Assembly (NCBI RefSeq): GCF_001194135.2
Contig: NC_068995.1
Coordinates: 36,341,773-36,394,681 of the forward strand
Length of the DNA stretch: 52,909 bases
DNA from: Octopus bimaculoides
Taxonomy: Eukaryota
Reading direction: 5' to 3'
Shown: positions 18,160 through 52,909 of the stretch, in pieces
How positions within the stretch are numbered: position 1 is the stretch's first letter
Layout: each line of letters opens with the position of its first letter
Program-made: the position numbers and the translations under genes
Notes under the pieces: model-generated
Databases searched by the model: none
What the model saw: the letters and a program-made list of their open reading frames with translations, nothing else
Told to the model about the DNA's origin: nothing

Positions 18160-18505
18160 TACCAGTGTTGCCTTCTAGCACTTGTGCTGGTGGCACGTGA
18201 GAAAATCATTCGAGCGAGATCGTTGCCAGTGCCGCTGGACTGGCTCCCATGCAGGTGGCACGTAAAAAACACCTTTTTGAGTGTGGCCGTTGCCAGTACT
18301 GTGTGACTGGCCCTCATGCCGGTGGCACATAAAAGCACCCACTACACTCTCGGAGTGGTTGGCGTTAGGAAGAGCAACAAGCTGTAGAAACTCTGTCAGA
18401 TCGGATTGGAGCTTGGTGCAGCCTTCTGGCTTGCCAGTCCTCAGTCAAATCGTCCAACCCATGCTAGCATGGAAAGCAGACGTTAAACGATGATGATGAT
18501 GATGA

Positions 18506-18508
<3 letters not shown>
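18160..18508 (+). mobile_element. RTE 3' UTR/tail with internal tandem units
   Basis: Repeated TTGCCAGT...GGTGGCAC(G/A)TAAAA units, then the canonical tail and (GAT)n. Confidence 0.85.
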
Positions 18509-18546
<38 letters not shown>

Positions 18547-18879
18547 TATATACACACACACACACACACTAGCTTAAAAGCCACACTCTGTATGAACTTT
18601 TACCTAGCTCCTCTGGAGGGCTAAAATAGACCTGCAACCCAAAACTAAGAGAGCTAAATAGCATGATTATAATATATCTATAATGACTATTTAGCATTGA
18701 AAGACATATTATGAGGTTCAAAAGTGTGTATGTTGAATAAATATCAGAAGGCATGTTTTTTGTTAAAAAAAAAAAATCATTTATTTTGAATTGTTGATAA
18801 GTTCTAAGCAAAAGGATCATATAAACATTAATTTGTATGTTTGTATGAGAATGTTGAAAAGAGTGTAATGCACTGGTGT

Positions 18880-20416: not shown

Positions 20417-21447
20417 AAAGTGTCCCCAAAATATGTATACACACTTTAAACAATTGTAAAGTCGGTGTTTATTAAAATACATTTCATTTAAAAAATTTAA
20501 TAGAATCTACGTACATTATTTTATTGTTTTATCAATGCCTGTTTTCAAACTGACATCTGTTCTGGTCCAGGTACTGCTGACAGTACGAAGCAATGGAGTC
20601 ACAATCAAAACAATTCATTTGGTATTTGTGTGCATTCAAGTTCAATGGCTGCTCTCAAATCAGTGACTGTTGCAGGTTTCATAGCATAGACTTTGTCTTT
20701 TAGGTATCCCCATAAAAAAAAGTCTAGTTGTGTGATGTCTGGTGAATGTAGAGGGTATTCAATAAAACCCCTTCGTCCAATCCACCTGTTTGGTAAGATC
20801 TCATCAAGTAAGGATCTGACATTGCGATGGTAGTGTGGGGATGCCCCATTTTGCTGAAAATAAAACTCCTATCTTCAAAGTCTTCTCTAATGCTTGGCAT
20901 GGCAGACTGTTGCAGCAAGTTTAAGTAAACGTGACCAGTCACAGTAGCGTAAGAAAAAAAAATGGTCCAATTTATCCTTTTGATGATAAGCCACACCACA
21001 CTGTAACTCCTGGTAAATTAACATGGTGTTCCACCATAACATGTGGATTCTCAGGCCCCCAGTAGGTGCAATTGTGGCAGTTAATTGAGCAATTTAATTT
21101 GAATGTGGCCTCATCATTCCACACTATCTTTGTTGGAAAGTGTGCATCTTCTAGACATCGTGCCAAGTACCACTCACAATACTGCACTCTTCGGTCTAGA
21201 TCATCGTCATTAATAGCATGGACTAATCTTGGAATGTAGCTTTTCCATTGACAACGCTTGAAAATGCGTTGGACAGACGATTTTGAAATACCTACTTTAC
21301 GACTTGCTTGCCGCACAGATTTTCTTGGACTTTGGTGATATGTTTTCAGCACTCCTTCTTGCTTTGTGGGGGTTGTCAATGTTCATGGTCTTTCGGAATG
21401 CTTCTCGTGGACATTCTGAACAGTTCTATCTGCTTCAAACTTATCTC
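20417..21447 (-). mobile_element. Second DD41D Tc1/mariner relic, 5'-truncated
   Basis: [10 protein letters not shown] (HTH), [17 protein letters not shown]...WIGRRGF...[16 protein letters not shown] (41-residue spacing; D2 changed to N); 3' TIR CAAAGTGTCCCCAAAA at 20417. Confidence 0.9.
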
Positions 21448-21703: not shown

Positions 21704-23346
21704 TGGCGTCAGCAAGTAGCAATTCCAACTGTGAAAGTTTTACTCTTGAAGATATAGAAAATATAAACGCAAATGAGTATTTTGTCTCCGGACGATTCTG
21801 ATATTGATATTAGTGAATAGTTGTCAGACGAGGAAGATTTTGAGAACAAAAGTGATGAAAATGATATTGTAAACATAGCAACATGGTCAAGATTACAACA
21901 CCAATCACTATTCCTGATTTCATAGGAAACACTGGTCCACAACACAATTTACCTCCTGATGCTCAACCATTGGACTATCTATTTTTATTTTTACCAGAAA
22001 GTTTTTTTGAAAATGTTACAGAGGAAACAAACAAATATGCACAACATATAATTTCTATTCACGAAAGAAATGATCCACTATGGCAGCCAACTTATACTGC
22101 GGAAATGAGAGCGTTTTTCACAATCAATATTATGTTTGGTGTTAAACAGCTTCCTCGACTGTGGAACTACTGGAGTCCTGATATAAAGTATGGTGATCCG
22201 TATATCTCAAGTATAATGTCAAAGATGAGGTATTCGAAAATATCTCAGTATTTACATTTAATTGATTCTGCTAATGCCCCCAGCAAAAACGACCCAAACT
22301 ACAATCCCCTGTACAAAGTACGTCCTGTAATTGATTTACTCCTTAATAGTTATAAAACTGTGTATCTACCTGGGAAAAATCTCAGTGTAGATGAAGCCAT
22401 GATAGGCTATAAGGGCAGAGTACATTTTCAGCAGTACATGCCTGCCAAACCCACTAAATGGGGGATCAAGATATGGGATGTTTGTGAATCAGACACTGGA
22501 TACTGTGTAAACTTTGATGTTTACACAGGTAAAAAATATAATGGAAACAAACCATATGGATTGGGACATGATGTAGTATGGTCTCTTACTGAACCGTTTT
22601 ACCACAGATCTGACACCTCTATTTTGACAGTTTTTTTTTTTTTCTTCAGTGACTTTGGCAGAAAATCTTACACGTGCAGTACTGTTATGGGCAACTGTAA
22701 AGGTTTACTCTGTGAAATGAAAACAAAATTTTAAAAAAAGAGGGGGCATTTTACAAATGCAAAAAGAAAATTTTTTAGTTATTGCTTTCAAAGACAAAAG
22801 ATAGATTTTATTTCTATCTCCTAATGAACAACCTGGTGTTGGCGCTGAGGGGAAACCCTAGTGAATATTTGTTATAACAAATATATGGGTGGGGTTGATA
22901 AATCTGACCAATATCTGGCACATTACCCAGTTGGTTAACCTGGGAAGAAATGGTGGAGGTACATTTAGTGGTTTTTAGTTAATTTAACTATAGTTAATTC
23001 ATATATTGTATATGTAAAAAGCCACAAGGTACCTCCGCCACCAAAGAACTACACCCATTTGAAATTTTGGGTTGACATCGCATCTCAGTTACTTGAGGGC
23101 TTTTCTTTGAGAAAGCACAGAACTGGGAGAAAAGCAAAATTAACTGAGGTGGATGTCAACAAAGAAAATATTGACTTTCATAAAGTCGAAAAGATAAATG
23201 GAAGAAAAAAATGTTTGCTGTGTTTGCTACAAAAAAGAAAAACTGCAAAAGGGTATCAGATTGAGACTTCGTATATGTGTTCCTTTTGCAAAGTACCCTT
23301 GTGTCAAGGGTTCTTTGGGCAGTTTCATGACAGAAATATGTCATAA
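21704..23346 (+). pseudogene. piggyBac (PGBD4-like, DDE_Tnp_1_7) transposase pseudogene
   Basis: Acidic N-terminus; YKVRPVID, NLSVDEAMIGYKGR, YMPAKPTKWGIKIW, VDKSDQ, KKWWRYI; C-terminal Cys-rich domain; stops and frameshifts. Confidence 0.93.
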
Positions 23347-35847: not shown

Positions 35848-35954
35848 TTCAAAAGTGATCCTGTCAAGATCATCCTGACTTTTTTTTTTCTCCAAGAATC
35901 CTATGTTCATGACTTTATTCCTTTTTTAACACACTAATCTCCAGTTTAAGAGAG

Positions 35955-36247
35955 ATTTATTGAGCGAGATCGTTGCCAGTGCCCCTGGACTGGCTCTTGT
36001 GCGGGTGGCACATAAAATACACCATTCTGAGCGTGGCCGTTGCCAGTACCGCCTGACTGGCCTTCATGCGGGTGACACGGAAAAGCACCCACTACACTGG
36101 TTGGCGTTAGGAAGGGCATCCAGCTGTAGAAACTCTGCCAAATCAGATTGGAGCCTGGTGTTGCCATCCGGTTTCATCAGTCCTCAGTCAAATCGTCCAA
36201 CCCATGCTAGCATGGAAAGCGGACGTTAAACGATGATGATGATGATG
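35955..36247 (+). mobile_element. Young RTE 3' UTR/tail
   Basis: Nearly identical to 43300-43600. Confidence 0.88.
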
Positions 36248-39420: not shown

Positions 39421-39647
39421 TTGCCAGTACCGTCTGACTGACCTTCGTGCTGGTGGCACATAAAAGCACCCTTTACACTCTCTGAGTGGTTGGCGTTAGG
39501 AAGGGCATCCAGCTGTAGAAACTCTGCCAAATCAGATTGGAGCCTGGTGTAGCCATCTGGTTTCACCAGTCCTCAGTCAAATCGTTCAACCCATGCTAGC
39601 ATGGAAAGCAGACGTTAAACGATGATGATGATGATGATGATGATGAT
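39421..39647 (+). mobile_element. Young RTE 3' tail just upstream of the first coding exon
   Basis: Canonical tail and (GAT)n. Confidence 0.88.
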
Positions 39648-39775
39648 ATGGTATATATATATAACCAGGCAATACTTCATGCAAACAGTAACAGAATTAT
39701 TATTTTGTAATGTTCGATACATATTGTTAATTAAATTTTCTCTTGTTTTGTAGAAACTTGCAAATCTGAAGAAGA

Positions 39776-39853
39776 ATGTGTGCTGCTGTGACTTATTCTC
39801 CAGGAGATGTTGTTTGGGCAAAAGTCCCTCGCTATCCATGGTGGCCTGCAGAG
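39776..39853 (+). CDS. PWWP-domain protein, coding exon 1 (MCAAVTYSPGDVVWAKVPRYPWWPAE)
   Basis: Literal PGDVVWAK..YPWWPA motif; acceptor TTTTGTAG before 39754; in-frame TGA at 39767 upstream of the ATG; donor GAG|GTAAAC, phase 0. Confidence 0.93.
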
Positions 39854-40189
39854 GTAAACTATGCTTCAATAGAATATGTTGCCTAAAATGTTGCATGTTA
39901 TTTTCTTTTTTTCCTTTGTTTGCTAAGATCAGAAATACTCTACACCAATTAATCCAAGTTACAAGTTGAAAACGCTCTCATTGGCAGTTAGTGATTCTTC
40001 ATCATCATCATCTTTTAACGTCCTTCTTCCATGCTAGCATTTATACTTAAATAAAGTAAATTACCAACTTGATCATCTGCCTTGAAAACAGAGGTACCTT
40101 TACAACATCAATGAATTTAGGGTGACAGACATAACCTGAAAATATCACTCAATGTTAAGAGTTGTTGTTGTCATTTATAACAGTATGAA

Positions 40190-40400
40190 GGTGGTGAGCT
40201 GGCAGAATTGTTAGAGAATGAGAAAAAACGCTCTGTAATATTTTTTCCAACTCATTATGTTCTGAGTTCAAATTCTGCTGAGGTCAACTTTGCTTTTTCA
40301 TTCTTTCAGGATCAATTAAACAAGTACCAGTTGAGTTTTGGGGCCATCATAATTGACTAACCCCTTCCCTAAAAAAATTGCTGACCTTCCAAAATTTTAA
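40190..40400 (+). mobile_element. SINE family A (intronic)
   Basis: GGTGAGCTGGCAGAATTGTTAG...GAGTTCAAATTCTGCTGAGGTCAACTTTGC. Confidence 0.8.
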
Positions 40401-40579
40401 AGCAATTATGACAATATGATAGATGTTGATGGCAAGAATGTTGATATCTAATTCAGAAGCTTGTTTTAAAACGCCAGTTCTGGTTCTGCTCTAAGTCAGT
40501 CATAACGAAACAGGGAAAGATAGGGCTTTAAGCATTTCAGAAGTTGCTCTTTGTTCTCCTCCCTACTCTGCAAGACTGA

Positions 40580-40602
40580 TGGATGCCATCTCTCTCTCTC
40601 TA

Positions 40603-40688
<86 letters not shown>
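40580..40688. repeat. (CT)n microsatellite
   Basis: Direct observation. Confidence 0.97.
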
Positions 40689-40693
<5 letters not shown>

Positions 40694-40789
40694 GCTTCAT
40701 TCTGATTTTATTCACCATACTTTGAGCTGTGCTGGTAATAGCGGGCTGACTTGGTGCTTCATCTTGAGTAACTAATTCAGCTGAGTCTC

Positions 40790-41896
40790 ATTTATTTCTT
40801 GTATTTATGGCTACTTATAAAAGCCAAAACCTTCGCAGGTGAAGAATGTGCCTCGCAACATATGCTTGTAGTTAGCGACTTCAGGGTCAGGGCTAAATGG
40901 ATGCCCAGTAGGCGATCAGCATGGGGGAGAAGGGTCTGGAAGCTTAAGGGTACTTTTGGCAAAATAGAGGGGAGATATAGCATCACATGATGTGGAAGAC
41001 AGCTGGGGGTTGCTATGGGACAACCTGCTGAGGTCCACTGACCAGATCTGTGGTTGGTGCAAAGTCTCCTCTTGACCCAAGATAACGTGGTGGTGGAACA
41101 ATGTTGTTGATAAGGCCATTAGAGAAAAGAAACACGCTTGGAAAGACTGGAAGAACGGTGGTAGCAGGGAATTGTATCAGACTGCCAGAAGGGAAGCTAG
41201 GAGTCAGGTTTATTTAGCCAGAGGGGAAGCAGATAAGAAAATTTTGGCTGTTCTGCACCATGAGGATCAAAGACTTGAGGTATTTCGTGTTGCAAGACAG
41301 TGTGTGAGAGAGAATCGTGATGTCGTAGGAGAGAAATGTGTTCGCATGAATGATGGTTCACTTGCACTAAACGAGGCTGCAAAGAGAGAGGTTTGGAGAT
41401 GCCACTATGAAAGGTTGCTAAATAAAGAGAATGAATGGGAGAAAGAGAATCTGCCGGATGCCGACAGAGGCACCAGCTATCTGAAGTGACAGTGCCTTGG
41501 TAGATAAAGCAATTAAGCATATGCAAACAGAGAAAGCCCCTGACCCATCAGGAATCACCACAGAGATGCTCATAATATCTGGCGGTGTCAGCTATAGCCT
41601 AGTCACCAATATAGTTAACCAGGTGATACATGAAGGAGTCATACCCAATGACTGGTGTAGCAGAACCATAGTCAACTGCTACAAAGGTAAAGGTGACGCT
41701 TTAGATACAAATGATTACAGAGGTATCAAGTTGTTGGATCAGGTAATGAAGGTCACTGAGAGGGTCATAGCCCAACTAATTAGGGAGAGAGTCAGTTTAG
41801 ATGAGATGCAGTTTGGGTTCGTGCCAGGGAAATGCACCACTGATGCTATATCTCTGGTAAGACAGCTGCAGGAGAAATACCTAGCCAAAGATAAAC
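40790..41896 (+). mobile_element. RTE LINE ORF fragment (EN end to RT), intronic, disrupted
   Basis: KTFAGEECASQHMLVVSDF, YERLLNKENEW, KAPDPSGITTEML, YKGKGDALD..YRGIKLL, MQFGFVPGKCTTDAI; stops and frameshifts. Confidence 0.93.
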
Positions 41897-41904
41897 CTCT
41901 GTCC

Positions 41905-42245
41905 CACTATTTGGTACCTTAGGCAAATGACTTCTGCTATAGCCTCAGGCCAACTAAAATTTTGTGAGTAGATTTGTTAAATGGAAACTGAAAGAAACCC
42001 AATGTGTATGTGTGTGTGTGTTTGTCCTTCTTTGTCTTGACATCATGTAATAGATGTAAATTATTGTCCCTGTCATGCAAGCAGTGTCATTGATTTCCAA
42101 TACTCTGCAAGAACATATATGACCATGGGGATGTATTAACTTGCTTGGAAACAGGTGAGAGTTGGTGACTGGAAGAATGGCATCTAGCTGAAGAAAACAA
42201 CTTGACTCAAAGTCCAACCCATGCAAGCATGGAAAAGTGGACATG
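41905..42245 (+). mobile_element. SINE family B head joined to an RTE-like tail, old
   Basis: ACCTTAGGCAAATGACTTCTGCTATAGCC...GGAAACTGAAAGAAACCC; ends CCAACCCATGCAAGCATGGAAAAGTGGACAT. Confidence 0.65.
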
Positions 42246-42436
42246 AATGAATATTATCATTTTAATGTTCACTTTCCTATGCTTTGCCTGGGTCAGACAA
42301 AATTTATTGGTAGATTTTTATACATTGACATACATACACAGATACACACATACACAAAGTTAATAGTTACAATTTTGTATTTTATTTTATATATCTGTTT
42401 TGATACATGACCTGTAAACTGTTTTTATTTAAACAG

Positions 42437-42522
42437 GTTGTAGCCCAGGAAGACTGTAAAATTGTTGATCATGGGAAGAAAAATCCTATAGCTTATATCA
42501 CTTTTCCATGTGAAGATGCTTA
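42437..42522 (+). CDS. PWWP-domain protein, coding exon 2 (VVAQEDCKIVDHGKKNPIAYITFPCEDA-)
   Basis: Acceptor TTTATTTAAACAG|, donor TA|GTAAGT; phase 0 to 2; continues the PWWP beta-strands in frame. Confidence 0.88.
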
Positions 42523-42839
42523 GTAAGTATTTGATATTATGTTTGATTAGTCTTTAGTTTAGTATATTTTCAGCAAAAATAATTTCTACCATATCTTGTG
42601 GTATACAAGCCAAATTTTTTAATCCAAAATTTACAGTCAAAAATAAAAGTTGACTTTTACACCAAGTCTACTTTTGAGGACCAAAAATTCCATTTGAAAT
42701 ACAGCAGTATTTGGAGGAATACTTATGTTTCAAGGTTTACACTATGTACTACATTAACTTGTATGCTAGAAAATGTGGTTCTTCTCTTTTATTTGTTAAA
42801 ATTGAACTGGCTTGGTTGAACTTTGGGTTTTGTAATTCC

Positions 42840-42935
42840 AACACAGATAAGGATACACATCACATCACAGATAAAGATTCACATCACACACAGATAAAGA
42901 TACATATCACATCACAGATAAGGATACACATCATA
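42840..42935. repeat. Minisatellite of about 24 bp, about 4 units (ACAGATAA(G/A)GATACACATCACATC)
   Basis: Direct observation. Confidence 0.85.
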
Positions 42936-43138
42936 GAAGGACAGAATGGACTAAGTGGAGCAGGAGGAGACTTGTGGAATAGAAGAGTTGCTGAAGAAGT
43001 CACAGATGTGTGACGAAAGATTTTCAGACAATGGACATAAAATAAAATAAGAACAAGTGAAGAACAAATATATAGTGACAGGAAAAAGAAAAATGACCAT
43101 CCCAAAATATAACAATATTATATTATAATATTTCATAC

Positions 43139-43600
43139 CTCACCGAGGCGATGACTACGGACCGAGACCTTTGGAAATGGGCTGTGCGTGAGAAGACCCG
43201 GCAAGCCAAGTAAGATCGTTGCCAGTGCCCCTGGACTGGTTCTTGTGCGGGTGGCACATGAGATGCACCATTTTGAGCGTGGCCGTTGCCAGTACCGCCT
43301 GACTGGCTCCTGTAGGATTTTCGAGCGAGATCGTTGCCAGTGCCCCTGGACTGGCTTGTGCGGGTGGCACATAAAAGACACCATTTCGAGCGTGGCCGTT
43401 TTCGTGCGGGTGACACGTAAAAGCACCCACTACACTCTCTGAGTGGTTGGCGTTAGGAAGGGCATCCAGCTGTAGAAACTCTGCCAAATCAGACTGGAGC
43501 CTGGTGTTGCCATCCGGTTTCACCAGTCCTCAGTCAAATCGTCCAACCCATGCTAGCATGGAAAGCGGACGTTAAACGATGATGATGATGATGATGATGA
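43139..43600 (+). mobile_element. Young 5'-truncated RTE (ORF end LTEAMTTDRDLWKWAVREKTRQAK*, 3' UTR, (GAT)n)
   Basis: ORF C-terminus joined to the tail shows that the abundant tails are RTE 3' ends. Confidence 0.9.
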
Positions 43601-43649
43601 TATTATATTATGCTATATTAGATTATAATATAATATTATACTACTTATT

Positions 43650-44110
43650 TAGATGCGCTAATCTTGACTCTGCCTATGGATGAGGAGAGTTGTATCAAGA
43701 AGTGTCAGTCTCTAATTGTGGAGAGAATGTGTGGAAGATGTGAAATGAAGTGGTGAGAAAGGATCTTCAAATGTTGGGCCTCACAGAGGAGATTACAAGG
43801 GACCGAGACTCCTGGCAGTTTGCTGTGCTTGAGAAGACATGTCAAACTAAGTAAAATTGTGGTTGTCCTTGCATACAGGCATGTCTCTTGCATCCCGCTA
43901 CAGCTGAGTGATCCTAATCATGCAGGCTTGTAAAAAGCACCCTGTGCTGGTGTTGCATAAAAGCACTAAGTACACTTTGTAAAGTGGTTGGCGTTAGGAA
44001 GAGTATCCAGTTGTAGAAACCATGCCAAAACAGGCACGTAGCTCATCTGGCCAGCCCCTGTCACACTGCCCAACCCATGCCAGCATGGAAAATGGATGGT
44101 AAATGATTAT
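43650..44110 (+). mobile_element. Older RTE 3' end
   Basis: MDEESCIKKCQSLIVE...EVVRKDLQMLGLTEEITRDRDSWQFAVLEKTCQTK* plus tail. Confidence 0.85.
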
Positions 44111-44383
44111 GATATAATATTTCATAACATTGTTCATGATGATGATATGAAATAATATAATGTAATATAATATTCAATGTAGATTTTTATGCTTATTTCT
44201 GAAATCATAGCATAAAGTAATGGAATCGTTTAAATTATTCAAAGACTGTTCTTTTATAATTTCTGTAATGACTTTCAACCAGTTTCTCTAAACTATTTAA
44301 ATTGTAGTTCCTCATAGTTGTTAGGTTATAGCTGCACGTGCATGCACACACACACACACCATTCAGTAGGTTCAATTCGTCAA

Positions 44384-44596
44384 CCCTTTTGATTTTTAAA
44401 CCGATCACATCCAGCGCAAACATTCTACCTGTTTTATGTTCAAACCACCAGTCAGATCCAGATTCTCATGCTTACCTACCATATCATTTCTAAAATTAAA
44501 CAACCACATGGAAGAAATTTTGAAGCTACAAAATAATGCAAAACAATGTCAATAAATAACTATTACATTTGATAGAGTAACCTCAATGTTAAAAGA
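44384..44596 (+). mobile_element. TTAA MITE
   Basis: TCAA|CCCTTTTGATTTTTAAACCG...AATGTTAAAAGA|TTAA. Confidence 0.7.
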
Positions 44597-45489
44597 TTAA
44601 TCTGACAGGACAGAGAAACTTGTAACAGGTTTATTTTCCTGGATTTATTCTGTAAAATTTGTACATTTCTTCAGAACCTGAAAATGTTTGTTTACCAAAC
44701 GAAAGAGCTCTTAACCATTCCACCATCTTGCTTGTGACATTCTTATATGTAGATAATTGTTCTATTTTCCATGTAAAATTCCTAGAGAGAATGAAATATT
44801 TTCAGTTCCCTTAGCACAAATGTTATTTGATATAATGTTTGTAAGTTATTTTCGTGTTTATTGGGTTGAAATACAGTATTTATTTTCAAAACATTTTACT
44901 CCCTCACCAAAAAGAATTCAGTTCGTTACCCTTTACTTGTGATACTATATATCAGGCATGTGCCATCAGTAATTACTCAGAGTAGGCAGTTGGTGATGTT
45001 TATGTAGTAAAACACGCAAAAAAAATAAGCAAAACACTGGCATGCGACTGAGTTGGAGGCAGAATTACTTCTGCCTTTATAGCACTTAAAGAAAATGTTA
45101 TAGGAATGTACACAGCATGTGTACTACAGCAGTACTATGCGTAGTTTTACTGAGATTGAACAGCAGAGGCAAATTATGCCAACCTAAGCTACAAAAAAAT
45201 TAAATATTTTGCATTTTATGCATAGTATTCAGAGTAACCTTCATAATTTTATTGAATTAGGTGCATATGTTGCTATAAAAGTAAAATGTAACTATTCAGG
45301 GTAGGCATTGCCTATCTTGCCTACCCAGGTGGCACGTCCCTACTATATACCTGTATCACTATCACTTTCTGCTGATTTTTTTTCTTTATTTGTTTTACTT
45401 TTTTACACTTTTCAAGTCTACAGTAAAAGACCTGACTTGAAATTTCTTCTAGAAATAGTTATGGTGAAATATCTAATCTTTTCTCTTAA

Positions 45490-45710
45490 CCCACTAGCAT
45501 TCAGATTAATTTATCAAATGTAATGCTTATTTATTTACATTATTTTGAATTGATCATGCATTATCTTGTAGCTTTGAGATTTTGATGATCTCATCATTTA
45601 CTTTTAGAATGACATTGGTAGGGTAGACATGAGAAGCCAGATCTGGCCAGTTTGAACATAAAACAAATAGAATATTTTGACTGGTTGTGGCTGGTTTAAA
45701 TGCTAAAGGA
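45490..45710 (-). mobile_element. TTAA MITE, best-preserved copy
   Basis: TTAA|CCCACTAGCATT...AATGCTAAAGGA|TTAA. Confidence 0.85.
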
Positions 45711-45869
45711 TTAAACACATTTTATACTACTGACAAGTTTTGCAGTCAGCTTACTTATTACATTGTAGCTATTAAGGCTAACGTGAATAGCTGCGGTCTT
45801 CATTGATATATTGTAAAATATTTAATCTAGGGACATTAATTATGTTAGAGGAATTTTGAGAAGAGAAGT

Positions 45870-46030
45870 TGGTTACGTGAACTCCAGTGTTCAACTAAAA
45901 CTTATTTTATTGACCCTGGAAGGATGAAAGGAAATTGGCCTTGGTGGAATTTAAATTCCAAATGCGAAGAGCTGAAAGAAATGTCGCTAAGCATTTATCC
46001 AGCATAGTAACAATTCTACTAGCTTGCACT
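45870..46030 (-). mobile_element. SINE family A
   Basis: GACCCTGGAAGGATGAAAGG...GGAATTTAAATTCC. Confidence 0.7.
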
Positions 46031-46241
46031 TTCTTTAGAGGAATTAATAATGCAGAAATATAATTGTTTAGGCTGCTTAAATTTTAGATTTTAACTTCCA
46101 TGAAAGTATTTTTATCTTGGCTAAAGATCAATTACAAAAGTTAGCACATTTAGCAGATGGTGGTAAGAAACACCAACTCTAAAGTAAAAATACAATATTC
46201 AGAACTTTATAACTCACTGTTTATTTAGTATTATATAATCA

Positions 46242-46420
46242 TCCTCATCATTTAACATCATGTTGGTATGAGTTGAATGGTTTAATAGGAACCGACAAGC
46301 TCCAGTATCTGCCTTGGCTTAGTTTCGAGTTGGATACCCTTCCTAATGCCAACCACTTAACAGAGTGTACTGGGTGCTTTTCTTTTTGTAGCACTGGCAC
46401 TTGTGCGGTTACCAAGTATT
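46242..46420 (-). mobile_element. RTE 3' tail
   Basis: CCCTTCCTAATGCCAACCACTT...GGGTGCTTT. Confidence 0.7.
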
Positions 46421-46857
46421 CATAAGACAAGATTCCCCCCCCCCCCCCAGCAACTGAGTGGGGTGTAGTAGTATTGAAGGATGTGAAAACATGACAGTTT
46501 AAATAGTTTAGGACTGTCGACTTATTCTTTTATTCCTATGGAATCAGTTCAGAAATGACACATGTTCACAAGATATATCACCCCTGGTTTAAGGTAAGTT
46601 TGTAGATCATCTCTAAGCATTCGTTTTTTACCTATTTTTACCCCTTGTCTGCCCACTCAAGTCCACAGGCCAGGTTGGTCATTTGTTTATCTATTAGTAA
46701 ATACCTGGGAAGATGCCTATATCTCGGCCATGACACATGGCCCAGTAATAGTTTCAGCTAACAGATTAGTTGACTAACAGATGTCATTTAAGTAATCAGT
46801 CATTTTTATGTAACATACTGCACTTGTCACTGAGCCCATTTGCTATGTGACTAGTGA

Positions 46858-47065
46858 AAAGCAGTGAACCGGCACAATCGTTAGCTTGTCGAACAAAATG
46901 TTTAACAGCATTTCTTCTGGCTTATTAGTTTCTGAGGTTAAATTCTGCTGAGGATGACTCTGCCTTTCACTTTCTTGGGCTCTAAAATAAAGTAGCTGTT
47001 GAGCACTGGGCTCAATGTAACTGACTTCCCCCTCTCCTCAAAATTGCTAGCCTTGTACCAAAATT
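46858..47065 (+). mobile_element. SINE family A
   Basis: GCAGTGAACCGGCACAATCGTTAGC...CTGAGGTTAAATTCTGCTGAGG...CTTGTACCAAAATTTGAAAC. Confidence 0.75.
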
Positions 47066-47122
47066 TGAAACTGTTATGTGACTGGCGTGTAAAAGTTATT
47101 ATTTATTTACTTTTTATTCCAG

Positions 47123-47193
47123 TGATATTATTCGTTCTGAATCTAATATCATGCCATTTAATACAGAACACAAGAAGAACTACATAAAGAAAG
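47123..47193 (+). CDS. PWWP-domain protein, coding exon 3 (-Y DIIRSESNIMPFNTEHKKNYIKK G-)
   Basis: Strong acceptor TTTACTTTTTATTCCAG|, donor AAG|GTAAGA; phase 2 to 1 completes TA+T=Tyr and links exons 2 and 4 in frame. Confidence 0.85.
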
Positions 47194-47213
47194 GTAAGAC
47201 TTTACGTCTACAA

Positions 47214-47583
47214 TAATGTTTCCCAACCTATTTTCCCCCTATGCCCCACCATAACTTTCCAAAAAAATGTATGCCCCACCAGTGGTTGGAAAAAAAGAAC
47301 TTTATCTTTAAAATTTTATGATTATATACTTTCTTTAAAGAAATGTCCACACTAGAGCATTAGAGTAGCACTATACTGTAACAAACAGTCTTCACACAAT
47401 ATGCTTCGCTGGAGAGATTGGTTTGGCTAGGCTGAGTGTAGGTGTAGTATGTCTGCTGTGAAAAAAAGATTTTCACAATTCCATGTCCCACTTAAAAGAA
47501 AAAAGAAAGTTTGGATCCCATCCCCAACCCTAGTTTTCCCAGGTTCCACCAGTAGGGTGTACGCCCCACATTAGGAATCACTG
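47214..47583. mobile_element. hAT (Charlie-like) MITE
   Basis: TAATGTTTCCCAACC...TTAGGAATCACTG; 8-bp flanks GTCTACAA/GTCTATAG resemble the NTCTAGAN target. Confidence 0.55.
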
Positions 47584-48093
47584 GTCTATAGCCATCCTTC
47601 CTTGTAATGTATTATTAAAATAACCAGACATCATAAAACTGACATAGGCTTACAAGCTCAACCATTAAATTTTTTTTTTTTTTCCGAACGATAATGATTC
47701 ACAAACCTAATACTCGACTTTGGTTTCTCGTAATTTTAGGCATACGAGAGATAAATCTATATCCTAGTATAAACAGGGTGTAGACTAATTGATAGTGTGT
47801 TGATAGTGTTGATAGCCTTCTTCACAAGAGAAATGTTCATTGATTTTACAATGGTGAATTATACTATCTGATATTTCTGTTAGATGGTCTTGATCAATGC
47901 AGTAGCAGTGACAGGTGACACATGATCAATTCCTTGCTTGTCCCCTGTATTTGTGCTTCTCCAGTTTACTTCTTCTTAACATCATTAATAAAAGGGGAAA
48001 AATAAAATAATTTTTCCCCTATTTATATTGTGTATCATTTTTTTTTTTTGGCTTTATCTATTATAATTCTTTGTATTTTATTTTTCTTTCCAG

Positions 48094-49058
48094 GTGAAAA
48101 TCTGCCAAATGATTTGAGTCAAAGATTCCTAATGGCTCTAAAATGTGCTCAAAAAGCTGCCAAGGACAACACTGATGTTACACACAAAAAAAGCTCATCA
48201 GTTAAGAATCCAACTGACTCTATATTTAATAGTTCCTTCAACAGTAAGTCATCTGTTGCTGGTAGTTCACACAACCAAGCAGATTTACTTCCTGACAGTC
48301 CTCCGGCTACATCAGGTGCCACCAGCACTATTACTAGTTACACAAATGAGACCAGTGACCATTTGAAGTATACCTGTAGCCAGTGTAACTTTTCTACTTG
48401 TCGGCTAAATTTGATGTTAATTCACTATAAACCTGAAGAAAATGTACTCCGTTGTCCTAGTCTGCCTGACTCTTTTGTGGCAAATGCTGACAACCGTAAG
48501 CGTCGAATGCTTGAGAATGATGCATATCTGAGAAGCCAACACTTCAAGGCCCCACGTCGCATGAACACACCAGAAGTCACCAGTCGTGTTCCTTGTTATG
48601 CCCGGAAACCAGCCTCACCTCCACCTCAGAAGGCCTTACCTACCACAGTTCATGACAGAGGTAGTTGCTATATGTTCCATGATGAACCCATCCGACAGCC
48701 AGCACATAAACCCAGCTTTTCATACCGGTCACTTCAGAAAAAAAAAGATAACTCCTCTTGCATGGGAGAAAATGAAAACTCCAAACGCAGTATTAATTCT
48801 TTTACACAACCAAAGACTTATACCAAACTGAAGTCATCGAAGGATCAAAGAAATGGTGTATTGTCTATTGGCAACACAGAGAGAAGAAAAGAGTTCCAGA
48901 TGAAGCCAAGTTATGATACTAGCACTCCTTTGGAAAATAAACTAGAACGGCCAACTAGAAAACCTCACTCCAGTGGTGAGAAAAGATCCAATGGGGAGAA
49001 AGATGAGAAGGAAGAGGAAACAGCAACAAGGAAGAAACTTCTTTATTCTGAAAAGTAA
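48094..49058 (+). CDS. PWWP-domain protein, large exon 4 (PWWP C-terminal helix, Ser/Thr-rich linker, C2H2-like motif, basic low-complexity region)
   Basis: 965-nt open frame in AT-rich DNA; acceptor TTTTTCTTTCCAG|, phase 1; ends at TAA 49056-49058 or at donor |GTAATG after 49054. Confidence 0.9.
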
Positions 49059-49414: not shown

Positions 49415-50040
49415 AAGCTGGCAAGCTCACAGAAGCATTAGCGCGCTGGACGAAATGCTTAGCAGTATTTCATCCATTGCTACATTGTGAGTTCAAATTC
49501 TGCTGTGGTCAACTTTGCCTTTCATCCATTCGGGGGTCAATAAAATAAGTACCAGTTGAACACTGTGGTCAATGCAATCAACTCGTCCCTCTTCCCCAAA
49601 ATTGCTGCCCTTGTGGCAAAATTTGAAACCATTATTTTCATCATTAAGCTGGAGAGCTGGCAGAACCATTAGCACACTGGATAAAATGCTTGGTGGTATT
49701 CCGCTTGTCGGTATGTTCTGAGTTCAAATTCCGTGGAGGTTGACTTTGCCTTTCATCCTTTCAGGTTCAATAAATTAAGTACTAGTGAAACACTCGGGTT
49801 GATGTAATCAACTAGGCCCCTCTTGCAAAATTTCAGACCTTGTGCCTTTAGTAGAAAGGATTATTATTGTTCATTTTGTCCATCCTTGTTCTCAGTTCAA
49901 ATTCTGCCAAGGTCAACTTTCCTTTCATCCTTTCAGGGTCAATGAAATAAATAGCAGTTATGCACTGGGGATCAATGTAATCAACTAGCCCCCTCCCCTC
50001 AAATTTCAGGCCTTGTTCCTATAGTAGAAAGGATTCTTAT
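49415..50040 (+). mobile_element. Three head-to-tail SINE family A copies
   Basis: GAGTTCAAATTC...TTTGCCTTTCATCC...CTTGTG/TTC cores near 49490, 49720 and 49895. Confidence 0.85.
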
Positions 50041-51680
50041 TACCTCTGCCTTAGCGAAGGCAGAGGTGTTGTTTGCAGTCGTGTTTGTTTGTTTGTCCAT
50101 GGACAAGATGCTGGATGGATTCGGATGAAACTTTCAGAGATGTTTGGCCTCGTGACTGGCAAAACTGATTAGATTTTGGGATCGATCCGGTACTGGACAA
50201 GGATTCTGGATTATTTGCTATGTTTACTTACATGATTATGATCTTACATTCACTTTCAAGTCTTTCTCAATTATCTACCTTTTTGCTGTTTCCGATGTTT
50301 TATTTTTGTTTCTCTATTATTAATTTTATTCGCATCTCTATCTTAGTAGAAATTGAGGATCTTTACCTTTTGACTGGCAGATCGAAAAATTTATTGTTTG
50401 TAACTAAACACTTTCAAACATCGTATACTGGTAGAATGTGTCACTTAAAACCTCTTTTATTCTGTAAAATTCATTATTTTCGAAGTTATTTCGTGTTAAG
50501 TTGTCGTTTTCAGTAATTTCAACCAATCAATGACATTGATTGAGCTGAATAAAATTACTGTTGTTGTTTGTCAACAACAACTTCCGGCAGTGTATATTTC
50601 GTTTGTCACTGTTATTTATGACATATTTCATCTCGGTTATGTTTGTATGAATAAACGAGTGTATCTGCAGCATGTTTACTTCATGGCACCATTTCTACTG
50701 CTTTTAGTTTTTTTTTTCCTGCTTTTCAGCTACTATTTTCGGAAAGACTTTTTTGCCCCTCCCCCCTCCAATTTCTTCATTTTTCACTTTTTTCCGTAAC
50801 TCTAACCCTAAAATCCCAACCCTAACCCTAACCCCCTAAAGCTAAAGCCAGTACAAATGCATAAATGATGTCATAAATAACAGTGACAAACGAAATACAC
50901 ACCACTGATAGTTGTTGTTGACAAACAACGGCAGTAATTTTATTCAGCTGAATACACGTCATTGTTTGGTTGAAATTACCGAAACATGACTACTTTAACA
51001 CGAAATAACTTTAAAAATATAAACTTTTCTCAACAACACTAGAGTAAAAGATGTTTTATATGACACATTCTACCAGTGTCCGAAGTTTGAAAGTGTTTAG
51101 TTACAAAAAATTAATTTCTCGATTTGCCGTTCAAAGGGAAAAGATCCAAAATTGATGGATAAAGAAATCAAACTACCTATAGACGGCAGCAAAACCGTTC
51201 AGAAATGAAATAACACTAACATATTTTCATAATATATATATTATGCATACATATTAACACTTAACAGTATACTTACATATATACATACATCTATACGTTG
51301 ATCTAAAACAACAGGAATACCAAAGGAAGGCTGGAATTTAAGAGAAGAGAAAACCAAAAGGTCTCATGCTATTTATTTAAAAATTCTTGAGTAGAACTTA
51401 TTACCTCCGCCTTTGAAACTATTTTGGATGGTGAATTTGTTAACTTTGGCTTCTATTATATAAGGATAAACCATTTATTACTGTTACTAAGTTTTCTACA
51501 ATCACCTTCACATTTCCATGACTACCATTGAGAGCGGTCGGGTTCATGTTTAGTATTCTCGTTTGTGACAGCTGTTGAGTTTATTTCAGATATTCTCATT
51601 TTAAAAATCATGTCGCTAATCGTTGAGAGGATGTTAGTGTTGCCTTGGTGGAGGTTTTCACTCTCTGCGTGCTCTTGTTG
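50038..51680 (+). mobile_element. Helentron-associated (HINE-like) element(s) with a nested MITE
   Basis: 5' hairpin ACCTCTGCC-TTAGCGAA-GGCAGAGGT; 3' GCCTTGGTGGAGGTTTTCACTCTCTGCGTGCTCTTGTT; a second TTATTACCTCCGCC near 51400. Confidence 0.55.
50357..51147. mobile_element. Long-TIR MITE (GGATCT...AGATCC family) with a (CCCTAA)n core
   Basis: About 285-bp inverted arms; 8-bp flanks GAAATTGA/AAAATTGA; CTAACCCTAA repeats at about 50803-50837. Confidence 0.85.
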
Positions 51681-52581: not shown

Positions 52582-52909
52582 TCATCATCATCATCATCGT
52601 TTAACGTCCGCTTTCCATGCTAGCATGGTTTGGACAATTTGACTGAGGACTGGTGAAACCGGATGGCAACACCAGGCTCCAATCTAATTTGGCAGAGTTT
52701 CTACAGCTGGATGCCCTTCCTAACGCCAACCACTCAGAGAGTGTAGTGGGTGCTTTTACGTGTCACCCGCACTAAAACGGCCACGCTCGAAATGGTGTCT
52801 TTTATGTGCCACCTGCACAAGCCAGTCCAGGGGCACTGGCAACGATCTCACTCGAAAATCCTACGGGAGCCAGTCAGGCGGTACTGGCAACGGCCACGCT
52901 CAAAATGGT
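52582..52909 (-). mobile_element. Young RTE 3' UTR/tail running off the window
   Basis: Reverse complement differs from 43267-43590 at about 8 positions by eye. Confidence 0.92.

Follow-up and report, generated by a model that had tools for sequence, protein, structure and literature searches.

What does the reading frame spread over four exons near the end of a 52,909-nucleotide (nt) stretch of Octopus bimaculoides DNA (hereafter the window) encode, and does the gene end where that frame meets its stop codon? The initial annotation of the window described a hidden gene at 39754-49058 whose 399-residue product combines a PWWP domain with an atypical zinc finger, could not be assigned to the PSIP1/HDGF, NSD, BRPF, DNMT3, GLYR1 or MUM1 families and might be an invertebrate-restricted chromatin reader. 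We find that positions 39776-49054 very probably represent the first four of the twelve coding exons of LOC106879584, which would specify a 659-residue nuclear chromatin-binding protein resembling PWWP3A/MUM1 (EXPAND1), with one PWWP domain encoded within the window (PWWP1) and a second encoded beyond it (PWWP2).

The exons themselves were read correctly. All internal boundaries of the four exons are formed by canonical AG acceptors and GT donors in the window sequence, and the exons, first read as 78, 86, 71 and 965 nt in phases 0/2/1, splice into 1200 nt, corresponding to 399 amino acids (aa) and a TAA; junctions, phases and translation were all exact on re-checking. That these are genuine exons and not chance combinations is indicated by the identity of the product to proteins from O. 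vulgaris (95%), Argonauta hians (74%) and Acanthosepion pharaonis (60%). The original start coordinate of 39754 is explained by a polypyrimidine tract and an AG acceptor (39752-39753) that end at 39753, and an in-frame TGA at 39767-39769 lies 9 nt 5′ of the ATG at 39776. Positions 39754-39775 are thus a probable 5′ untranslated region (UTR), and any non-coding exon upstream of them is likewise putative. The features of this part of the gene are listed below.

39754..39775, + strand: probable 5′-UTR of the first coding exon, judged from sequence and translation

39776..39853, + strand: coding exon 1, 78 nt, residues 1-26, with the motif YPWWPAE, donor GTAAAC and phase 0

42437..42522, + strand: coding exon 2, 86 nt, residues 27-55 (partly), spanning β2-β3 of PWWP1 with F49 and E52

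47123..47193, + strand: coding exon 3, 71 nt, the remaining PWWP1 barrel and the beginning of the helical part

48094..49054, + strand: coding exon 4, 961 nt, residues 79-399 (partly), with its true end at 49054 and not at 49058

48369..48455, + strand: degenerate C2H2-type finger YTCSQCNFSTCRLNLMLIHYKPEENVLRC, residues 171-199

49055..49058, + strand: 5′ splice site GTAA of exon 4, first read as the last base of Lys399 plus TAA

49055..52909, + strand: first 3.85 kb of intron 4 (~5.8 kb in total), from the GT-AG gene model

Within exon 4, PWWP1 ends at ~48182 and is followed by a Ser/Thr-rich linker, then by the degenerate finger and lastly by a basic linker. The surrounding DNA is AT-rich (33% G+C), and its twelve N gaps all lie upstream of 38212.

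The 399-residue product matches residues 1-399 of O. bimaculoides XP_052829231.1 at every position (399/399), and this protein, the product of LOC106879584, is recorded as an ‘uncharacterized protein’ of 659 aa. A homology search recovered three cephalopod clusters of proteins of 594-692 aa, from O. vulgaris, A. hians and A. pharaonis, the first of which also contains XP_052829231.1, the 660-aa product of O. sinensis LOC115220427 and an older UniProt entry of 485 aa (A0A0L8G2V9). Since both the peptide and the locus match O. bimaculoides records, the gene cannot be called hidden; it is already annotated in RefSeq and UniProt, where annotation is present for four cephalopod genomes. A literature search with the locus names gave no paper on the LOC106879584 gene.

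To define the complete gene model we used a segment of chromosome CM046615.1 (L001; window coordinate = L001 coordinate + 29775) from assembly GCA_001194135.2, to which window positions 29776-52909 are 100% identical, and searched it for the GT/AG boundaries that reproduce XP_052829231.1. On this chromosome-level assembly only one GT-AG solution exists, and it joins 12 coding exons into a frame for 659 aa. Coding exons 5-12 lie at window-equivalent positions 54858-65584, outside the window (window end 52909), and exon 5 itself (54858-54961) begins ~1.95 kb past the window end; tblastn found no match to residues 400-659 inside the window. Exon 4 ends in GAAAA, directly followed by GTAATG, and with the donor at 49055 the first base of exon 5 completes Lys399. 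As a phase-2 exon ending in AA and followed by GTAA always gives AAG-TAA, the apparent stop results incidentally from the splice site. Consistent with this model, cephalopod orthologue models all continue beyond residue 399 (…LLYSEK followed by KN(S/T)DS…). A four-exon gene ending in TAA at 49056-49058 is thus not supported: its stop overlaps the exon-4 donor, and the truncated model missed 260 residues, including the second PWWP domain.

A stop that arises in this way might nevertheless be used. If intron 4 were retained, or if transcripts were polyadenylated inside it, a genuine 399-aa isoform (PWWP1, finger and basic linker) would arise beside the 659-aa form, because the frame meets TAA at once when the exon-4 donor is left unused, and several annotated isoforms in O. 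vulgaris do differ at the N- or C-terminus. However, residue 399 is the end of no full-length annotated model from O. bimaculoides, O. sinensis, O. vulgaris, Argonauta or Acanthosepion, and a stop that follows automatically from the phase-2 AA end and GTAA needs no selection to explain it. Moreover, the TAA is not conserved: reading on past the donor in P0009, a genomic fragment of a further octopod, yields …SEKYVGI and meets no stop. We consider such an isoform very unlikely, and we take the 659-aa protein as the product of the gene in what follows.

The presence of a PWWP domain at the N-terminus, as first reported, is borne out by profile and structural comparisons. Residues 10-101 of the window product match the Pfam PWWP model (PF00855) at 48.1 bits (cut-off 25.6), and the full protein matches the same model in two stretches (79.4 bits). 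We predicted the structure of residues 1-229 with AlphaFold, using a 30-sequence alignment; a PWWP1 profile search, which returned mostly nameless 57-60-aa single-exon fragments, was used only to deepen this folding alignment, and a model of a full 660-aa orthologue built from a three-sequence alignment (mean predicted local distance difference test score (pLDDT) of 31) was discarded. Over residues 1-108 the pLDDT is 70-93, and the predicted fold comprises five strands (residues 12-15, 23-28, 45-49, 54-58 and 64-66) followed by two helices (72-80 and 84-110). Foldseek returned 103 matches in the PDB at E ≤ 0.001, the best 50 of which are all PWWP domains; among the matches listed are PWWP1 of NSD2 and NSD3, BRPF1-3 and DNMT3B, with template modelling scores of up to 0.65 by target length. 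Residues 1-108 are accordingly modelled as a confident PWWP domain.

The initial annotation further proposed that Y20, W23 and F49 form the aromatic cage of this domain. In a PWWP1 profile with 18 relatives these residues align with Y233/W236/F266 of NSD2 PWWP1 and with F/W/W of DNMT3B, the established cage residues of those proteins, and the family-invariant E52 aligns with the Asp of WFGD in DNMT3B. Across 22 relatives W22, W23, P24, F49 and E52 are invariant; Y20 is conserved in most lophotrochozoans but not in insects. Equivalent cage positions in other PWWP domains are Y18/W21/F44 in HDGF2 and Y1096/Y1099/F1147 in BRPF1 (PMC3119473). In PWWP2 the cage-equivalent residues are Y450, W453 and F474, and their positions are conserved. 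Given the alignments, the invariance and the recurrence of the same positions in PWWP2, the proposed cage is positionally correct, with Y20, W23 and F49 at the canonical sites.

The domain that bears most directly on family membership lies beyond the window. PWWP2 (residues ~436-535) passes the cut-off of the Pfam model MUM1-like_PWWP (PF20884), scoring 40.5 bits against 27.7 (residues ~443-473 and beyond), whereas the best score for this model within the window is 14.3 bits. The best PDB match of a PWWP2 profile is human MUM1 (3PMI; E 4.3e-11, 46 bits), with NSD2 next at 36.6 bits; for the PWWP1 profile the favoured matches are NSD2, DNMT3B and MSH6, and MUM1 scores only 22.8 bits. Over residues 1-399 the Pfam models for the N-terminal part of PWWP3A/B gave no match at E ≤ 1. 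The view that the protein could not be assigned to MUM1 or the other PWWP families therefore holds for the fragment encoded in the window and fails for the whole protein. PWWP1 and PWWP2 share 31% identity (E 4e-11), and the introns of the two units are placed alike: a phase-0 intron two residues downstream of the motif WP, an 86-nt exon, and then a third exon of 71 nt in one unit and 67 nt in the other (exons 1-3 and 6-8; L001 10001-35809). This arrangement suggests that the two units arose by intragenic duplication, though ancient introns shared among PWWP domains would look alike.

From end to end the protein consists of PWWP1 (residues 1-108), a Ser/Thr-rich linker, the finger (171-199), a basic Lys/Arg-rich linker, an acidic Ser-rich stretch, PWWP2 (~436-535) and an acidic tail. 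From octopus to cuttlefish the proteins are 60-95% identical, with 300 invariant columns, and the PWWP domains, the finger region and the tail are all strongly kept. Charge is distributed along the protein as follows.

Residues 1-108, PWWP1: isoelectric point (pI) 6.7, neutral

Residues 201-399, linker with RKRR, KKK, RRK and RKK clusters: pI 9.9

Residues 400-435, acidic Ser-rich stretch before PWWP2: pI 4.1

Residues 436-535, PWWP2: pI 9.5

Residues 536-659, tail: pI 4.1

The atypical zinc-finger motif noted at the outset is present, in the form of a degenerate C2H2 finger. The octopus protein keeps C173-x2-C176-x12-H189 and has E193 at the position of the fourth ligand, and so lacks the classical four-ligand pattern C-x2-4-C-x12-H-x3-5-H. 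All five cephalopod sequences have Glu at this position, four residues after the His; among 29 distinct non-cephalopod finger sequences (C-x2-C-x12-H-x3-H/C) the residue is His in 26 and Cys in the other three. In a deep profile search (described below), profile positions ~6-200 align with ~30 longer proteins that bear one canonical finger at the equivalent place, and the consensus of the finger in relatives is Y-x-C-x2-C-x-F-x3-R-L-N-V-I-V-L-H-x-K-x-H. Because the relatives have a canonical finger at the same place and the cephalopods have Glu, the Cys/His motif is, by sequence comparison, a derived C2H2 finger whose fourth ligand has been lost. C199 is invariant in cephalopods and might, speculatively, serve as a replacement zinc ligand; E193 is another possible substitute. 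AlphaFold gives the region a β-β-α pattern at a pLDDT of only ~50-55. None of the Pfam zinc-finger families was significant for the motif, with readings as a zf-HIT or POGZ-type finger rejected at 12-14 bits (cut-offs 24.7-27), and the best resemblance in the PDB, to the C2H2 fingers of ZHX1, was likewise not significant.

Beyond the gene structure, domain identities, cage positions and family relationships, we infer ligand specificity, bivalency and a nuclear role. The protein is most likely a nuclear, bivalent reader of methyl-lysine and DNA that acts as a chromatin scaffold. Each PWWP barrel has a complete aromatic cage (Y20/W23/F49 and Y450/W453/F474) that would receive a methylated lysine of a histone, the most plausible being histone H3 di- or trimethylated at lysine 36 (H3K36me2/3), and the basic linker and the basic surface of PWWP2 would contact DNA. 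One molecule could in this manner engage one nucleosome, or two neighbours, bivalently, and might serve as a scaffold in chromatin, as proposed for vertebrate MUM1. The PWWP domain of human MUM1 binds H3K36me3 and H3K36me2 peptides weakly, with dissociation constants of 0.1 and 0.4 mM, respectively (PMC3119473). Human PWWP3A, the only member for which this is known, is reportedly recruited by 53BP1 to sites of damage, where it relaxes chromatin (as related in PMC12045991, citing Huen 2010). A survey of the cephalopod histone-mark machinery makes no mention of PWWP proteins (PMC9476566).

To place the protein among its relatives, a profile of the three cephalopod orthologues was searched against 1.84 billion representative proteins (E ≤ 0.001), which yielded 82 relatives in two groups, one lophotrochozoan and one insect. 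The lophotrochozoan proteins (600-1,240 aa) come from Lingula, Argopecten, Haliotis, Tegillarca, Sinanodonta, Mytilus, Lottia and the nemerteans Lineus and Tubulanus, and typically contain an N-terminal PWWP, a MUM1-like PWWP and the PWP3A-B_C module (PF20886), one part being absent or below the Pfam cut-off in some models. Two of them are named by NCBI ‘PWWP domain-containing DNA repair factor 3A-like’ and ‘MUM1L1’. Representative accessions are given below.

Lingula: XP_013384163

Argopecten: XP_069138182

Haliotis: XP_046583869

Mytilus: XP_052101172

Lottia: XP_009044062

Nemertean: XP_064618862

The insect proteins (1,200-2,400 aa) are uncharacterised and include Drosophila willistoni GK25409, D. 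erecta LOC6550349, Bemisia LOC109042115 and Gryllus GBIM_01969 (P0021, P0023, P0031 and P0053). The Gryllus relative also keeps a degenerate second PWWP (residues 2099-2200) and a PWP3A-B_C-like end. With respect to the suggestion of an invertebrate-restricted reader, the combined PWWP and C2H2 front end was found here only in protostomes; for the family as a whole the suggestion fails, as its Pfam modules take their names from vertebrate PWWP3A/B and an amphioxus protein carries PF20886.

Several observations weigh against membership in the PWWP3A/MUM1 family, or against the function we propose. Most of them concern PWP3A-B_C. The Pfam model of this module has no match in the three cephalopod proteins, and a local hidden Markov model (HMM) of it matches ~45 of the relatives and not a single cephalopod protein. 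The same HMM found nothing in a six-frame translation of L001 that included 10 kb downstream (best E 3.9), and hhalign aligned the cephalopod tail to the module over only 18 columns, with a probability of 0.6%. In addition, no vertebrate protein is present among the relatives whose names were looked up, and the proposed link to vertebrate MUM1 derives from Pfam models and one PDB match, not from phylogeny. As for function, PWWP domains bind peptides with low affinity, and sequence is no guide to their specificity. A reading of VMPEIWIPS in the tail as a remnant of YVMDVWIPEA in PWP3A-B_C was also considered and found unsupported (hhalign E 0.1, probability 0.6%). We place membership on PWWP2 and the overall layout and regard the C-terminus as lineage-specific. 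On this basis the octopus gene is, as far as its sequence can tell, a real, annotated, uncharacterised and lineage-modified member of the known PWWP3A/MUM1-like family.

How the cephalopod protein came to differ from its relatives is a matter on which we offer only a tentative account. An ancestral protostome reader composed of a PWWP, a C2H2 finger, a MUM1-like PWWP and PWP3A-B_C may have been remodelled in cephalopods into a lineage-specific double reader, losing the end module and the fourth zinc ligand, keeping both cages, and gaining a new acidic tail and a set of partners unlike that of vertebrate MUM1. It is very unlikely that the gene is a cephalopod-specific paralogue or a decaying copy and not the orthologue of the PWWP3A-like gene of lophotrochozoans, with a canonical PWP3A-B_C copy elsewhere in cephalopod genomes: the undetectable end module and the lost zinc ligand would fit such a history, but the deep search gave one cephalopod cluster and two short fragments (P0010 and P0011) that match the C-terminal half only, and decay in particular is disfavoured by the intact frame and the octopus-cuttlefish conservation described above, which extends to the PWWP domains, the finger region and the tail. 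A PWP3A-B_C profile search for a second cephalopod gene returned two amphioxus proteins only, and was insensitive in that it did not recover its own query sequences.

The introns of this lineage-modified PWWP3A/MUM1-like gene, and the DNA around it, contain several repeats and mobile elements. A pair of 328-nt inverted repeats, 98% complementary, lies at 43267-43594 (intron 2) and 52582-52909 (intron 4), flanking coding exons 3-4, with a third, partial copy (93%) at 39444-39637 just 5′ of exon 1 and older copies of the same dispersed element at 18199-18553, 35954-36247 and 41431-41740. Pairing of the intronic inverted copies in the pre-mRNA could create an ADAR substrate or promote back-splicing. 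Intron 1 contains a 141-aa open reading frame (ORF; 41497-41922, + strand) with a match to the reverse-transcriptase model PF00078 at 21.6 bits, under the cut-off of 29.6, which is probably a decayed retroelement. Farther upstream, a fragment of a piggyBac-type transposase ORF occupies 21883-22734 (+ strand; PF13843, 165 bits), and the adjoining ORF at 20972-21379 (− strand) has weak matches to Tc1/mariner-like helix-turn-helix models, all under Pfam cut-offs. Simple and tandem repeats comprise (AAT)38 at positions 1-114, a 74-nt unit at 458-686 (2.8 copies, 92% matches) and a 173-nt unit at 49714-50041 in intron 4 (1.9 copies). An Rfam scan of the window gave no match. Outside the window and 3′ of the gene, L001 43140-45809 (− strand) holds a neighbouring gene that encodes a SAXO1-2 (PF05217) protein and is a possible synteny anchor.

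The additions made here are modest: the fragment is now read correctly, the finger has been traced to its origin, losses specific to cephalopods are described and a link is drawn to an uncharacterised insect family. As a matter of method, a truncated model can pass for complete when a phase-2 exon end meets a GTAA donor, and the domains on which family assignment turns can lie hidden past the edge of a window. For cephalopods, the analysis adds one more uncharacterised, putative methyl-lysine reader. For the evolution of chromatin readers, it describes lophotrochozoan MUM1-like proteins with two caged PWWP domains, insects that keep the PWWP and finger front end, and cephalopods in which the end module is missing. 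None of these three points is surprising enough to change current views. The analysis also defines a protostome-wide and wholly uncharacterised family of PWWP + C2H2 proteins that includes Drosophila genes.

Comparison with known systems places the octopus protein at different distances from four sets of proteins. NSD2/NSD3 PWWP1, DNMT3B and the MSH6 PWWP are the best profile and structural matches of PWWP1, with the cage in register; the likeness is at the level of the domain only, at 14-25% identity, and the octopus protein has no SET, methyltransferase or MutS domain. With vertebrate PWWP3A (MUM1/EXPAND1) and PWWP3B (MUM1L1) it shares long disordered linkers and the placement of a MUM1-like PWWP in its C-terminal half, and the lengths are similar, at about 660-710 aa. 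It differs from them in having a canonical N-terminal PWWP and a C2H2-derived finger, and in having no detectable PWP3A-B_C. The insect PWWP + C2H2 proteins align with it through an N-terminal PWWP followed by a single finger (profile positions ~6-200), whereas they are longer, have a canonical H-x3-H finger and do not conserve Y20, and most have no detectable second PWWP. The best non-cephalopod matches are the lophotrochozoan PWWP3A-like/MUM1L1 proteins (E 1e-35 to 1e-12, in two matched stretches), in which an N-terminal PWWP, a long linker and a MUM1-like PWWP follow one another in the same order as in octopus. Unlike the cephalopod proteins they have PWP3A-B_C, at 36-48 bits (26.9 in Tegillarca P0014, against a cut-off of 27.0), and the bivalve and gastropod members examined have no finger motif. 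The Lingula protein unites all four parts, and its finger stands at the same place as that of octopus, intact, as C-x2-C-x12-H-x3-C.

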